DNA of 64,000 nt from Macrostomum lignano (lineage: Eukaryota), in NCBI GenBank assembly GCA_002269645.1, contig NIVC01002758.1:62001-126000 (forward strand), read 5' to 3'. The position numbers were made by a program, and so were the translations under genes. Each line of letters opens with the position of its first letter. Within the stretch, counting starts at the first letter, position 1. Below are positions 6,238-48,317 of the stretch, one piece after another. The notes under the pieces were generated by a model. It was not told the origin of the DNA. It worked only from the letters and a program-made list of their open reading frames with translations, and did not search any database.

Positions 6238-6673
6238 CGCTGCACGTGTTTGTATTGACTAGCTTTTTAATACGGAAATTGACTTCCCGTTTTACTCTTC
6301 TAGAAAGGCTTGTCTATATCCCCATATGTACTCTCTCTGCACATGCATTTAGCCCATATTTGCTCTTATTGTGCAAACTAGAAATATGGGTAACTTGCTT
6401 GAAAACTAGCACGACTTGCAGAGTCAGGTTCGTGTTTATTAATGGAAGTAAATAGGACTGCGATTCTGGTTATTTTGTTTAAACTGTTTGCACTAGGTTT
6501 AGCATTTTCCACTCACCCATTTTCCCCATAGTAGCTCCGCAGTTTACTTGTGTCTAGACAAAACTTTTCGTCATTTTCACATGAATTCATGCTATAAATT
6601 CTTTCAGGCCTACTGTGAGTAGCCAGATCTAGAAATAAAAACAGATTTTTATACAAAATAAAATCAATAAAAA
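6238..6673. promoter_or_regulatory. Putative bidirectional promoter between head-to-head genes
   Basis: The start codons at 6237 (-) and 6674 (+) diverge and are only ~440 bp apart. Inferred from geometry only. Confidence 0.4.
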
Positions 6674-7144
6674 ATGTCGCAGCCAAGTTCAGCGGTCATT
6701 GTGGAAGGCGAGGCGCCAGAATCGGACGATGAAGAGCAGCAGCTGACTGACTCGCCATCCTCCGATGTCAGTTCAAAGAAATCGACTGCTCCAACTGTTG
6801 CAAAAGACGCCATAGCAACAGAGCACGGGGCGCAGTCTCGGCTGCAGCAGCAGCAGCAGCAAAAGACTAGCCAGCAGGAGCAGCAGCGTCGCTACGCTAG
6901 CAGCGCGTTGCACGCCAGATTTTTTCAAGACGCCGGCAAACTGCAATCCGCGCTGGTTGCTAGGCGAGCGTCAACCTACGAGGCGGCTACTAAAGAGCTG
7001 CGCGGAGTTGCTAGCCAATTAGCTAAGACGCACGCGTGCATTCAGGATGCCTCGCATGCGCTTCGGCTGACTACTAATGATCTGTACAAACTTGACGACC
7101 GGCTGCAAGCCCTGACTAAGACTGACTGGCTGGCTGGCTTGTGA
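6674..7144 (+). CDS. BLOC1S3: BLOC-1 subunit 3 (single exon, 156 aa)
   Basis: N-terminal V.GEA.ESD.E motif (IVEGEAPESDDEE) and a C-terminal helical region (LHARFFQ...LRLTTNDLYKLDDRL) resemble BLOC1S3. Confidence 0.75.
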   Translation: MSQPSSAVIVEGEAPESDDEEQQLTDSPSSDVSSKKSTAPTVAKDAIATEHGAQSRLQQQQQQKTSQQEQQRRYASSALHARFFQDAGKLQSALVARRASTYEAATKELRGVASQLAKTHACIQDASHALRLTTNDLYKLDDRLQALTKTDWLAGL

Positions 7145-7469: not shown

Positions 7470-8390
7470 GAATAGATCAGCTACCCAACAACAGACTAGG
7501 GGATAGAGCGACTCCCTAGCAATAGACTGAGGGATAGAGAGGCCCCCTCTACAACAGACTGGGGGTAGAGAGGCCCCTCTACAACAGACTGGGGGTAGAG
7601 AGGCCTCTCTACAACAGACTGGGGGTAGAGAGGCAGGCCCCTCTACAACAGACTGGGGGTAGAGAGGCCTCTCTACAACTGACTGGGGGTAGAGAGGCCC
7701 CTCTACAACAGACTGGGGGGTAGAGAGGCCCCTCTACAACAGACTGGGGGTAGAGAGGCCCCTCAACAACAGACTGGGGGGTAGAGAGGCCCCTCTACAA
7801 CAGGCTGGGGGTAGAGAGGCCCCTCTAGACCAGACTGGGGATAGAGAGGCCCCCTCTATAATGGATAGAGAGGCCCCCTCTAGACCAGACTGGGGATAGA
7901 GAGGCTCCCTCTATAATGGATAGAGAGGCCCCCTCTAGACCAGACTGGGGATAGAGAGGCCCCCTCTATAATGGATAGAGAGGCCCCCTCTATAATGGAT
8001 AGAGAGGCCCCCTCTACAACAGACTGGGGGGTAGAGAGGCCCCCTCTAGACCAGACTGGGGATAGAGAGGCCCCCTCTATAATGGATAGAGAGGCCCCCT
8101 CTATAATGGATAGAGAGGCCCCCTCTATAATGGATAGAGAGGCCTCCTCTATAATGGATAGAGAGGCCCCCTCTACAACAGACTGGGGGGTAGAGAGGCC
8201 CCTCTACAACGGACTGGGGGTAGAGAGGCCCCTCTACAACAGGCTGGGGGATAGAGAGGCCCCTCTACAACTGGCTGGGGGATAGAGGCCCCTCAACAAC
8301 AGGCTGGGGGATAAAGGGCCCCTCAACAACAGACTGGGGGGGTAGAGAGACCCCCTCAACAACAGGCTGGGGATAGAGCGGCTACCCAAC
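7470..8390. repeat. Composite minisatellite (~30-bp GAGAGGCCCCTCTACAACAGACTGGGGGTA and 24-bp ATGGATAGAGAGGCCCCCTCTATA units)
   Basis: Tandem units seen directly; they explain the spurious ORF 7971-8285. Confidence 0.93.
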
Positions 8391-8446
8391 AACATATTTT
8401 CAAGTTATTGAAATTGCAACTTCATTAACCCCATGGATTTCTTCAG

Positions 8447-11400
8447 TTGTCCAAAGCCACAGCTCGATTTGGTAGCAGCCTTGCCGCTACCGCGCGCTCA
8501 GTTGCTGGTCATAGACTGAGTACCAACTGCTTATTGTTGCGTCAGTCATTTTCGCCGGCGCTTTGTAGGCGATGGGTAGCAACGGAGCCGGCAATTTTCT
8601 CGTCCACCGCAGCGTCAGTTTACACGGTTGCTAGGCGACAGAAACACACAGATTTGCGCCCGCCAAAGCCAACAATTGCTTATCGACTAGTGGCCTCAGC
8701 GCCAGCCGGTCTGCAACCTTACCTGAGACTGGCTCGATTAGATAGGCCTATTGGCACCTGGCTATTGTACCTGCCTTGCGCTTGGAGCATCACCTTGGCA
8801 ACTCCAGCTGGCCTGCTGCCAGATCCGCTTGTGCTGGGCCTATTCGGCTGCGGCGCCCTGCTGATGCGAGGCGCCGGCTGTACTATGAATGACATTTTAG
8901 ATAGGTGAGCCGGACAGAGAGTAGGGGAGGGAGAAGAAAAAGGAGATGAGAGATGAGAGGCGAGATGAGAGGAGGGAGGAGAGGAGAAAAGAAAGGAGAA
9001 AAGCGAAGAATGGAAAGTGGAGAGGAGAGAAGAAAATATAGATAAGAGGATAGAGGAGAGAAGAGAAAAGATAGATAAGAGGAGAGAGGAGAGAAGAGAA
9101 AAGATAGATAAGAGGAGAGAGGAGAGAAGAGAAGAAAGGAGAGAGAGAGATGGGAGGAGAGGGGATAGGAGAGAAGAAAGGAGATGAATGGGATGAGAGA
9201 AGAAAAGAGAGGAAAAGAGAGAGATGAGAGGAGAAGGGAGAGAGGGGAGAGAGAAGAGAGAGAGATAGAGCTGAGAAGAGAAGCGGGATTAGTATTGGGA
9301 AGTTTCAAGAACCCAAAAGGGTTGCATAGTGAGGCTTTGCGGCCGCATGCTGTAACATTGCTGCTATTAGTATTGGCCAGTGCTGAACAACTAAGGTTGG
9401 GACACTTAACCAAAGCATGCTACTAATAGTATTGAAAATTGAATGTCTCTCCTACTCAGGGATTATGACAAGCGCGTAGAACGCACCGAGGACCGGCCGA
9501 TACCTTCAGGCCAGGTGACTGTGCCCCGAGCTACAGCTTTCCTAATTGGCCAATCGCTGCTGGCCGCTTGCGTTCTGTTTCAATTCGACTGGTTCACCGT
9601 TGGTTTGGGCGTCGCTTCGCTCGGCTTAGTTGCCACTTATCCGCTGTTTAAACGGTTCACTTATTGGCCTCAGGCGGCGTTGGGTATGCCTAATTTATCG
9701 GTTTCATTTCTTCTTAATTATATTCTAATTTATAAAAGAAAGCCCTGGCACTATTGAAAAGTCGCTGCTAGTAAGCTACTTTTCTCGGATCTCCCTTGCA
9801 ACTTGCTCGACTCTGCGTAACCAGAAAATAGGATGAATCAAATGAGGTTTTACCATAGACTCAGGGGTCGGCAAACTTTTTATCTTAATGGCCAGATAAA
9901 GAATCTCGACCATTACTGTGGGCCAGATGAGAAAGGAAAAATGAATAGATAGAGAGAGAAGAGAAATAAAGAAAGTGAGAGATGCGATGAGAGAAGAGGA
10001 GAGGAGAGGAGTAGAGAAAAGAGAGGAGGGGAGAGAGGACTGAGAAGAAAAACAAACTTTGAGCGGGCCAGATTGCTATTGTGAAGTTTCAGAGGACCGA
10101 GGGCGGGCCAGAGTTTGCCGTCCCCCTGCCATAGACAACAGACCATTGCACTACTGCGGTATGGAGTGAGGATCGTTCTTAGTTAGATAAAAGAAGCAAG
10201 GGACTGTGTACACCCTGACATTGTCACACAACCGGCGAGAGGCATTACTGCCCATTCCGCCGACTCCCCCTGAGCAGGCACACAAGCGCACGGATACGTA
10301 CGCAGTCACACGCACAGGCACACGCTCACACAGGAGTGTACAGCGGCCCCTGACTTTATTTATCGTTAGGCATGTACACTTCACTGCGCCTTGGGGTTGG
10401 CCCTCAAGGGCGTTAATTGCACGAGCAGAGCCAAGCCGAGACTCCAATTCAGCCCCAAATTAATGTGACTGCACTTGGAATCGAGCCTGGGCCGCTGACA
10501 CGTCAGAGCGCCGCGCTAGACCGCTGGGTAGATCAAGGAAACAAAAAAATAGCAAGGCCTGTCATTAACTAAAGTTCACTAAATAGTTGAACTTCTGCTG
10601 CTGTAGTGCGATGAAACCTCACTGCTAGGTGTCTATCTAGTACTTATCTCCAAAAAACTACCTTGCGCGTCACAGGAATTACACTCAACTTCGGCATTCT
10701 GATTGGTTACTCAGCTATTCAAGCTCACTGTGATTGGCCAGTAGTGTTGCCACTGTACGGAGCGGCTATCCTGTGGACTATGATTTATGACACAATATAT
10801 TCGCATCAAGTATGAATTTATAATATTGTACACAATACTTAACAACCTTATCTACGAGTGCCTCTGTTGTGTGCGTTTTTTTCTAGAGTTATTTTAACTC
10901 CCAATAGGACACCTACAGTTGCGTTTAGTTCCTAGCTGCATAGCAACTAGATTTAGTTATTGTTGTATCCTGTTGTTTAACACTGTCAAGCCAGTTACCA
11001 TGGGCCATTGTGGGACACTTTTGTTTCTTAGGAAACTTTTGAAGGCTGTGTTCTATATTCCATGCAAGTTGATTCTCATATCGTTGGATTTTCTGCCAAA
11101 ATTTTCTAACGGAGAAGCAAAAAAAACTATAAATATTCTACATAGTCTACTATTGTGGTGAAGACCTCAGTAGGCAAGCATCGCATTTTAATGATATAAT
11201 ATATAATTGTCGATAGGTTGTAGCTTAACGGTTAGAGCGTCTAACTTCTGACTGAAAAGTCAGAGGTTCGATTCTCGACCCACTCGAAACAATTTGTGTC
11301 GTTTAACTCTGCATTGCTTCAGTTCACCCAGCTGTAAAATGGGTGCCAGCATTAGCTGGGGTAATTGAGGGTGTGTCAAAAGCCCCTGTATGTTATATCT

Positions 11401-12880
11401 TTGAAGAATATTTTTCAAGAATCTCTGGAACAACACAAGCCTTTAAGAAGTTTTCTAATAAAATGTAGTGTCCCACTCTGTACTTCTACTTGTAGTACTC
11501 GTAGTTCTTAAAATGCTTGCGCGCGCTGTCTGCCGTGTGTTCACTTATCTAGACGCACAAAAACTTTAAGATTGCTAAATATCTACTTACAGTAATCAAC
11601 AAAGTAGTTGTCTTGCATTTTGAAATTAAACATCTATATGAAATATGACAGCTATTCCTTACTTAGTAGCAGCATCGAGTATTTAATTAGTTTTTCTTCG
11701 CTTTTCTGTGGCGCTCCAGCTCCCAGTTCTGTCACCTGTTGTGTGGAGCGATCAGGCTTTCATATTCTATTTGGATAGCTTCTCTCTGGATATCACAGTG
11801 AGCTGAGTAGCCTCCAATCTCTGAAATGAGCTTGAGAATTAACTATAATAATGGAACTGCATTTAGTCACAGTATCGTTCGGCATAAACATGTTTTTTTA
11901 TTCAAGAACATTTTCAACTCTTTCACAGGGTTCACATTTAACTATGGGGCTCTGCTAGGCTATGCAGCACTAACTGGCACTATCGACTTGTCCGTTTGCC
12001 TGCCCCTGTATGCTGCTGGCTTTTGCTGGACAATGGTATATGACACCATCTATGCTCACCAGGTGACCGAACTGGGAAACGGGAGATATCTACTTTATCC
12101 AGTTATTGTTTTATATTATACTAATCATTTTATGTTATTATCTTATTTTTTGCAAATTATATTAAATTTAAAGCTTTATTTTTCACATTTTCTACTTAGA
12201 GTAGGCTATTTAGCTTTGGAAACATTGATTTCACAAAAAAATCAATATAGGAATGGCACTATGCTTGTGCGTATAATGGATTACACTAATTACAAAGGAA
12301 TATTATAGTTGTGTTGTATTTATTGTTTTATTTTAATTTGCAGCTGTTTAATTATGATTTATCACCAGGCTTTGTTGCGCATGAGGTGGCTTGTAACGCA
12401 CGTTTTTAACGCTCCTTTTTAAAAACCGAAAATGCTTATCTCGCTTTTCATCTTACTAACAGTAGTTTTAACTACCGAAATAAACTTTGTACTTTAATTT
12501 TTATTGTGCTATGTAAATTGTAGGACAAGGAGGACGATCTCATGGTTGGTGTTAAGTCGACCGCTTTGCTGTTTGGCGACGCAACAAAGTCCTGGCTGAC
12601 CGGCTTCACTCTGGGCATGTCGCTGCTTCTGGCCACGGCTGGCGCCAACGCAAACTGCGGCCTGTTTTATCACGCCGGTGCGCTGTACGCCTCGCTGCAC
12701 CTTGCCCAGCAGGTGGCCAGCGTTCAGTTGGACAATCCGGCCGACTGCTTGGCCAAATTCAAGTCCAATAGGAATCTGGGATTGGCCTTCTGGCTGGCTA
12801 TCGTGCTGGACAACTTCTTTGGCCTGCCCGTGCCCGGCTTTGGGGGCGGCTTTGAGGAGTCTCTGTTTGCTGAGGACTGA
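8447..12880 (+). CDS. COQ2: 4-hydroxybenzoate polyprenyltransferase COQ2; exons 8447-8904, 9460-9683, [10676-10809 OR 11929-12062], 12524-12880 (~391 aa)
   Basis: UbiA-family motifs: [54 protein letters not shown](A/S)HQDKEDD..GVKSTAL.FG. All splice phases are consistent. There is an Arg/Ser/Ala-rich presequence but no genomic ATG in front of it. Confidence 0.95.
8910..9285. repeat. Purine-rich (GA/GGAGA) low-complexity tract in COQ2 intron 1
   Basis: Seen directly in the sequence. Confidence 0.85.
9861..10128. mobile_element. hAT (Charlie-like) MITE in COQ2 intron 2
   Basis: Imperfect TIRs TCAGGGGTCGGCAAACT / AGTTTGCCGTCCCCCTG flanked by a perfect 8-bp TSD CCATAGAC (9853-9860 and 10129-10136). 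Confidence 0.8.
10150..10530 (-). mobile_element. tRNA-derived SINE (family B)
   Basis: On the minus strand the head reads AGCGGTCTAGCGCGGCGCTCTGAC...CCCAGGCTCGATTCC (A/B-box-like). The downstream motif is shared with the copy at ~1745. Confidence 0.5.
10676..10809 (+). CDS. COQ2: COQ2 mutually exclusive exon, rhodoquinone (coq-2e)-type: (G)[44 protein letters not shown]
   Basis: CACAG|GA acceptor and CAA|GTATGA donor, 134 nt, open in the COQ2 phase. Homologous to 11929-12062, with Leu in T-L-N and Ser in IY-S-HQ. Not in the ORF track. Confidence 0.88.
11212..11385 (+). mobile_element. tRNA-headed SINE with CORE-like domain (family A), copy 1
   Basis: tRNA-like head (TAGCTTAACGGTTAGAGCG...GGTTCGATTC) plus TTAACTCTGCATTGCTTCAGTTCACCCAGCTGTAAAATGGGTGCCAGCATTAGCTGGGGTA, which is identical in the copy at 43568. 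Confidence 0.8.
11929..12062 (+). CDS. COQ2: COQ2 mutually exclusive exon, ubiquinone (coq-2a)-type: (G)[44 protein letters not shown]
   Basis: TTTCACAG|GG acceptor and CAG|GTGACC donor, 134 nt. Phe in T-F-N and Ala in IY-A-HQ, as in vertebrate COQ2. Confidence 0.92.
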
Positions 12881-13254
12881 CTGTGTCTGTCTGTATTTTC
12901 AAGGCTTTCGCTAGATCGAGTTTTGTTATAGCTTAGAATTGGCTCTTATTAAATTTTGAGCTTTTTAGCATTTTCGATTCTATGTTTGGTAATGTAATTG
13001 CAACTATGTTGTGTGACTTTTATCCTCGTATGATGCACAATACTGTTAAAGCAAACGTGTTCATTTTAGATGTACCATCACATGGTTAAATGCATCTTTT
13101 ATATCGTTTTTTAAGCAAGTTAATGTTAGATTTTAGACGAAAAAAATTCAGCTGTAGCTAAAATGATTGAGAAGTTATTTTCCAATCTTCGAGTTATTTA
13201 GAAGCATATTTATTTATCGATATATATGCTTTTTTATCCTTTAGCGCAACCGCA

Positions 13255-13630
13255 TCACTCCGCCACTGTCCTGGAGGCTGTACATTGGCGCACCCACCTC
13301 ACTCCGCGACTCTGTCCCCTGGGCTGCACAATAGCGCATCCACCTCACTCCGCGACTCTGTCCCCTAGGCGGCACAATAGCGCACCCACCTAACTCCGCC
13401 ACTGCCCCGTGGGCTGTTCATTTGCGCACCCACCTCACTCCGCGACTGTCCCCATGGGCTGCACAATAGCGCACCCACCTCACTCCGCGACTCTGTCCCC
13501 TGGGCTGCACAATAGCGCACCCACCTCACTCCGCGACTCTGTCCCCTGGGCTGTTCATTTGCGCCCCACCTCACTCCGCCACTGCCCCTGGGCTGTTCAT
13601 TTGCGCCCCACCTCACTCCGCCACCCTGTC
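13255..13630. repeat. ~46-bp minisatellite with CCCACCTCACTCCGC core
   Basis: Tandem units; the same core recurs at 22620-22960 and 23745-24175. Confidence 0.9.
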
Positions 13631-13932
13631 TCCTAGGCTTTAGGTTGGTAAAGCTCACCTTTTTTGCCTAAATCATTCGTCTAATCGTCTCCTACATTTA
13701 AATAATTTTTGCTTTCATGAAAATTACTGTTGCAAACAAAGCAAACCAGATCAATAAAGTTCAGACGCTGTCATGCAACAGCTAGACAAGGAAACATCTG
13801 CTGCTCTTGCTACTACTAGCAGTAGTGCCACCTCGACGGCAACAGCGGCCGCTTCATGACTGTTCGATCCAGTGCCAACTCCGGCTGCTAGTCTAACTTA
13901 ATTGCAGTTTAATAGCTGATCGGATTAGCGCG

Positions 13933-48317
<34,385 letters not shown>

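Follow-up and report, generated by a model that had tools for sequence, protein, structure and literature searches.

A probable coq-2 a/e pair of mutually exclusive exons in the COQ2 gene of the flatworm Macrostomum lignano

Animals that make rhodoquinone (RQ) carry two mutually exclusive exons in coq-2, of which the a exon resembles the COQ2 sequence found across eukaryotes, and in all e exons examined Phe204 is replaced by Leu and Ala243 by Ser (C. elegans numbering) (Tan et al., 2020, eLife 9:e56376, PMC7434440). The segment encoded by the variable exons is part of the enzyme core, with the two diagnostic residues adjoining the substrates, and in C. elegans deletion of exon 6e abolishes RQ and deletion of exon 6a strongly lowers ubiquinone (UQ) (Tan et al., 2020, PMC7434440). 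The published exons are 131-140 nucleotides (nt) long, not a multiple of three, e lies upstream of a in 20 of 20 species, and both exons measure 134 nt in all three platyhelminths, Fasciola, Schistosoma and Schmidtea (Tan et al., 2020, supplementary file 3, PMC7434440). Macrostomum lignano is absent from the published species list, and the Macrostomorpha branch deeper than planarians and parasites. Here we describe two alternative exons in the COQ2 gene of a 64,000-nt stretch of M. lignano DNA (assembly GCA_002269645.1, contig NIVC01002758.1, positions 62,001 to 126,000 of the forward strand; hereafter the window, whose own numbering is used throughout), which a first-pass annotation had read as a splicing switch between RQ and UQ synthesis.

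Both exons lie on the plus strand, the upstream one at 10676-10809 and the downstream one at 11929-12062, and both are, as the first-pass annotation had stated, exactly 134 nt long, bounded by AG and GT, entered in phase 1 and left in phase 0. The upstream exon is flanked as cacag/GAATTA...CATCAA/gtatga and the downstream exon as cacag/GGTTCA...CACCAG/gtgacc. When the one G left over from exon 2 (which ends at 9683) was put in front, translation reproduced exactly the two 45-residue peptides that had been reported, and in each 134-nt exon this frame is the only open one. The description of the two as divergent copies of the same segment likewise stands: they share 75 of 134 nucleotides (56%) and 25 of 45 amino acids (56%), and each was recovered in tblastn searches by the peptide of the other (E about 5e-15), which revealed no third copy of the exon within the 64-kb window. 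Joining exon 2 to the last exon through either one (junctions 9683 to 10676 and 10809 to 12524, or 9683 to 11929 and 12062 to 12524) gives an uninterrupted frame of 396 codons that ends at the stop codon at 12878-12880. A COQ2 mRNA with both exons or with neither shifts frame and meets stops within about 10 codons. Because 134 is not a multiple of three, only mRNAs that include a single one of the exons encode the enzyme; a frame shift upon double inclusion or double skipping is the usual way in which such pairs are kept exclusive in productive mRNA.

We then assigned the two exons on the basis of the published diagnostic residues. The upstream exon (GITLNFG...IYSHQ) has Leu at residue 4 and Ser at residue 43 and is thus e-type, the downstream exon (GFTFNYG...IYAHQ) has Phe and Ala at the same places, as in COQ2 of other eukaryotes, and is a-type, and the spacing of 39 between the two residues equals that between positions 204 and 243. 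An alignment of 12 sequences upheld the original choice of these positions as the diagnostic ones, with the L/S and F/A pairs of the window sharing columns with those of the RefSeq COQ2 isoforms X2 (e; GVTLNWG...VYSHQ) and X1 (a; GLTFNYG...IYAHQ) of Crassostrea virginica, which was among the species of Tan et al. (2020), although the oyster e exon (131 nt in C. gigas) is one codon shorter than the e exon of the window. The arrangement, with e (10676) preceding a (11929) and both measuring 134 nt, is that published for platyhelminths. To gauge how common the residue combination is, the e-exon region was searched with HMMER against 1.8 billion representative proteins and residue pairs were counted in the best 150 matches: F/A occurred in 115 and L/S in only three, namely the Macrostomum protein, a Soboliphyme baturini nematode e-form and one unnamed protein, so the L/S combination is rare, lineage-restricted and not expected by chance. 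A homologue search with a 73-residue query covering the exon region returned 11 short fragments only and no named e-form. The e exon retains all invariant or near-invariant residues of the segment (G1, N5, G7, L27, Y28, T35, Y38, D39, T40, I41, Y42 and Q45) among them the YDTIYxHQD stretch of the second Asp-rich motif.

The gene itself is an orthologue of COQ2 from the UbiA family, in agreement with its initial annotation, as indicated by the match of residues 30-277 to PF01040 (E 7e-56) and by the 6313 homologues retrieved, the best named of which are all COQ2 (mitochondrial 4-hydroxybenzoate polyprenyltransferase). Sequence searching gave a single relative with a solved structure, the Aeropyrum pernix UbiA homologue (4OD4/4OD5), which was the structural template in the original description of the a/e exons (Tan et al., 2020, PMC7434440). 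When aligned, this archaeal template itself has Leu and Ser at both of the positions that distinguish e from a (lgivLg... and fdtiySimd).

Of the systems described, the coq-2a/e exons of the platyhelminths Schmidtea mediterranea (SMESG000018280), Schistosoma mansoni (Smp_347140) and Fasciola hepatica are closest to the window, sharing the gene, the segment, the e-first order, the lengths of 134 and 134 nt, the Leu/Ser versus Phe/Ala distinction and the phylum, in a comparison that draws on published order, lengths, residues and coordinates and not on aligned exon sequences. In the window, the intron between e and a measures 1119 nt; the published coordinates put it at about 200-230 nt in the two parasites and at about 5.5 kb in Schmidtea. 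The functionally proven system is C. elegans coq-2, whose exons 6e and 6a are also 134 nt each, with e upstream, the F204L and A243S exchanges and the 39-residue spacing seen in the window. C. elegans, however, belongs to a different phylum, and the flatworm and nematode e exons may or may not share an origin; one nematode-like e exon (P0211) is closer to nematode a exons than to the Macrostomum e exon.

Both isoforms are represented in public M. lignano models. The best match to the e-form query was M. lignano PAA57658.1 (BOX15_Mlig002721g3), with 99% identity over the whole query, in keeping with the original guess that the DNA came from a free-living flatworm. The genomic locus of PAA57658.1 lies on another contig of the same assembly (GCA_002269645.1, NIVC01002460.1, 54-79 kb); it and the window align collinearly along more than 20 kb, at 89-94% identity, and both have the gene order BLOC1S3 - COQ2 - SMG1. 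Hidden polyploidy and a redundant assembly are documented for M. lignano (PMC5730564), and the window is therefore best read as a homeologous or allelic copy relative to this second locus. Exon 1, exon 2, the e exon and the last exon of the second locus, when concatenated, give PAA57658.1 residue for residue; its coding sequence therefore uses the junctions from exon 2 to e and from e to the fourth exon and leaves an intact a exon inside what is annotated as an intron. As the M. lignano annotation was built solely from RNA sequencing and transcriptome assemblies (StringTie/TACO/TBONE/TransDecoder; PMC5730564), the e-form is backed by RNA at the homeologous locus. UniRef contains the a-form as A0A1I8GS08, a prediction of the WormBase ParaSite type. 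The description of the second exon as hidden or unannotated therefore does not survive comparison with public data, in which both forms were already present; each public model carries one exon and none of the model sets contains the two together, which means that the isoform pair escapes automated annotation.

Comparison of the two loci showed that both exons are maintained. The e exon differs by two substitutions (one synonymous, one Ile to Val) and the a exon by four, all synonymous, and neither contains an indel; both exons are 134 nt long with intact AG/GT ends at both loci, whereas the introns differ by 3-10% and contain many indels. All exons taken together diverge by 1.6% compared with 5.5% for the introns (p = 3e-10), at an overall divergence that is too shallow for estimating the ratio of nonsynonymous to synonymous rates (dN/dS).

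Several observations weigh against assigning the window exons to the published a/e pair. The overall identity of the window e exon to e exons (51-64%) overlaps with its identity to a exons (39-64%); an attempt to class the exon by overall similarity failed for this reason, and with position-specific residues alone discriminating, its classification rests on few positions. The Leu/Ser pair described as invariant is not universal, since an annelid e-like exon has Gln in place of Leu. This exon occurs in a leech model (Helobdella robusta XP_009012311.1) in which an e-like exon (GITQGWG...IYSCQ, with Gln at the first diagnostic position) and an a-like exon are fused in tandem; an unnamed JGI protein (P0108; GITQNWG...IYSHQ) likewise has Gln, and the 'invariant' Leu may thus fail in both proteins. 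The RNA support concerns the e-form at the homeologous locus only, the a-form being known as a predicted protein, and A0A1I8GS08 is a gene prediction wrongly fused to SMG1. We found no paper in the searchable literature that links Macrostomum to rhodoquinone or coq-2e. Finally, the e and a exons alone do not differ significantly from their flanking introns in divergence between the two loci (2.2% versus 4.5%, p = 0.11). On this last result, the upstream exon could be a pseudo-exon that arose by tandem duplication and is either out of use or in decay, with the a-form enzyme as the only one of importance, and an open frame of 44 codons has a chance of about 12% of occurring in random sequence. 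Such a duplicate is nonetheless hardly credible: the e exon is included in a transcript-derived coding sequence at the homeologous locus, has lost none of the segment's invariant residues, those of the Asp-rich motif included, has retained its length, phase and splice sites with no indels at both loci amid introns that have accumulated many, and carries exactly the rare L/S pair. We conclude that the identification of the window exons with coq-2 a/e is well supported and that they are very probably the mutually exclusive exons that Tan et al. (2020) described.

In M. lignano, exon 2 would then be spliced either to e (10676-10809) or to a (11929-12062) and from there to the last exon at 12524, and the exchanged cassette would encode the membrane segment lining the aromatic-substrate pocket, together with the second Asp-rich motif (YDTIYxHQDxxDD). 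The C. elegans enzyme suggests, by analogy, that the a-form (Phe/Ala) would prenylate 4-hydroxybenzoate in the path to ubiquinone and the e-form (Leu/Ser) would prenylate 3-hydroxyanthranilate in the path to rhodoquinone. For M. lignano we infer these substrate preferences, the production of rhodoquinone and any regulation by oxygen from the systems in which they have been studied. Alternatively, the e-form could be expressed and have a role unrelated to rhodoquinone synthesis, for instance through a preference for another prenyl acceptor or chain length, in an animal without rhodoquinone, in line with the lack of any report of rhodoquinone for the genus Macrostomum in the searchable literature. 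We consider this very unlikely, as the e exon accompanies rhodoquinone synthesis in every lineage examined, its deletion in C. elegans abolishes rhodoquinone, and other flatworms make rhodoquinone, free-living ones included (Tan et al., 2020, PMC7434440), as is also evident from the RQ9 of planarians.

A switch to RQ-dependent fumarate respiration under hypoxia, as originally envisaged, is plausible by the same analogy: parasites move from a to e on entry into anaerobic hosts (Tan et al., 2020, PMC7434440), and M. lignano is an intertidal animal that is studied for its hypoxia tolerance. A serious alternative is that the exons are a genuine a/e pair that is not triggered by oxygen, both isoforms being expressed constitutively, perhaps in a tissue- or stage-specific manner, and maintaining a permanent mixed pool of ubiquinone and rhodoquinone as in C. 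elegans and cultured planarians. The e-form PAA57658.1 was obtained from ordinary laboratory cultures and passed an assembler filter that keeps isoforms reaching at least 75% of the major one (PMC5730564), and planarians kept in normal culture were found to contain RQ9; set against the parasite transition and the intertidal habitat, these observations make constitutive co-expression quite possible, if not quite probable.

If the exons are the published pair, they extend the coq-2 a/e architecture to the Macrostomorpha, early-branching flatworms, and the 134/134-nt, e-before-a arrangement common to planarians and parasites fits an old pair within the phylum. The M. lignano pair adds one species to a published arrangement, in which the phylum and the free-living lifestyle were already covered and the biology itself is established. 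With transgenesis, RNA interference and an annotated genome at hand (PMC5730564), M. lignano is usable as a tractable model and could serve as a free-living flatworm in which to study this anthelmintic-target pathway.

Next, we considered how the choice between a and e might be made. RNA stems are a known mode of steering mutually exclusive exons, for which mrp-1 is cited by Tan et al. (2020); control of the a/e switch is not addressed in that paper (PMC7434440). The intron between the two exons contains one arm of a 21-nt inverted repeat (11721-11741, plus strand), located 187 nt before the acceptor of the a exon and complementary to the 5' splice site region of the a exon. Its partner (12057-12077, plus strand) comprises the last 6 nt of exon a, the GT donor and 13 nt of intron, and 19 of its 21 positions are complementary to 11721-11741. 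Folding of 11690-12110 (z = -2.8) gave the stem in the minimum free energy structure and in the centroid structure alike. Using RNAduplex, we tested six splice-site windows against three introns, 18 tests in total, in comparison with dinucleotide shuffles. The a-donor duplex, at -38.0 kcal/mol versus -24.0 +/- 2.3 for shuffled sequences (reached in 0 of 200; z about -6), was the sole clear outlier, the other 17 tests being unremarkable or borderline. Among the latter, the exon 2 donor region (9669-9703) pairs more weakly with 10229-10275, 530 nt into the next intron (-37.3 versus -28.5 +/- 2.6, 1 of 200); the energy of this pairing is kept at the second locus despite several substitutions, and its significance is borderline after correction for 18 tests. 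Both arms of the a-donor stem are identical at the second locus, where they lie inside a perfectly identical intronic run of 108 nt, and with identical arms at the two loci compared there is no covariation for the stem. The duplex tests yielded no selector partner for the e exon, and the remaining intronic inverted repeats (I1, I3-I12) were set aside as being at chance level or AT-rich.

The stem resembles RNA-structure-controlled exclusive exons such as those of Dscam1, 14-3-3xi, mrp-1 and human ATE1 in that long-range intronic complementarity lies beside a variable exon. Unlike in Dscam1-type systems, where a docking site is accompanied by one selector per exon with covariation, the window has one strong stem, placed over the 5' splice site itself, and no docking and selector set. 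If the stem (11721-11741/12057-12077) forms in the transcript, it would enclose exon a in a loop and conceal its donor, so that the rhodoquinone (e) form would be the default unless the stem opens. That the a/e choice is set in cis by this long-range stem is a tentative proposal that we regard as rather doubtful; if it is correct, the coq-2 a/e switch would thereby gain its first proposed cis-element. The stem is an unreported feature and a candidate for the one element of this locus that might add something new.

The remaining coding exons of COQ2 are also on the plus strand. The first recognisable coding exon (8429-8904) is open from 8429, ends at the donor GATAG/gtgagc (8904/8905) and corresponds to the N-terminal portion of both PAA57658.1 and A0A1I8GS08; exon 2 (9460-9683) covers the region of the first Asp-rich motif and ends in phase 1 at TTGG/gtatgc; and the last coding exon spans 12524-12880, including the stop codon. 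In the first exon, no in-frame ATG follows the upstream stop (8426-8428) before the conserved domain begins, and both public models are 5'-partial too. The true start may lie in an upstream exon or be a spliced-leader AUG. As a candidate for the latter, we considered trans-splicing of the spliced leader of M. lignano, whose last bases are ATG, at cag/TTG (8446/8447), which would supply a start in a fitting frame; we rejected this site as unsupported, since the AG reads CTG at the second locus and PAA57658.1 starts 12 codons further on.

COQ2 is flanked on the same strand by BLOC1S3 upstream (6671-7141, plus; PF15753, E 2e-19) and by the SMG1 kinase gene downstream (from 13909, plus). ARAGORN predicted no transfer RNA (tRNA), and Rfam gave nothing above gathering thresholds within 8000-13500; a tRNA-like relic in the e-a intron (11214-11283), which scores 21 bits with the Rfam tRNA model, below the 29-bit threshold, is probably a decayed tRNA-derived repeat. 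Minisatellites with units of 30/61 nt, 46/135 nt and 21 nt are located between BLOC1S3 and COQ2 (7488-8394), between COQ2 and SMG1 (13242-13639) and within SMG1 (21054-21754), respectively. The first intron of SMG1, between exon 1 (13909-14121) and the next exon at 20644, consists mostly of two tandem arrays with 98% matches, 14289-18733 (24 nt x 185 copies) and 18756-20558 (34 nt x 54 copies), which give rise to spurious open frames exceeding 2100 codons. At the second locus, this SMG1-intron repeat occupies only about 160 nt.

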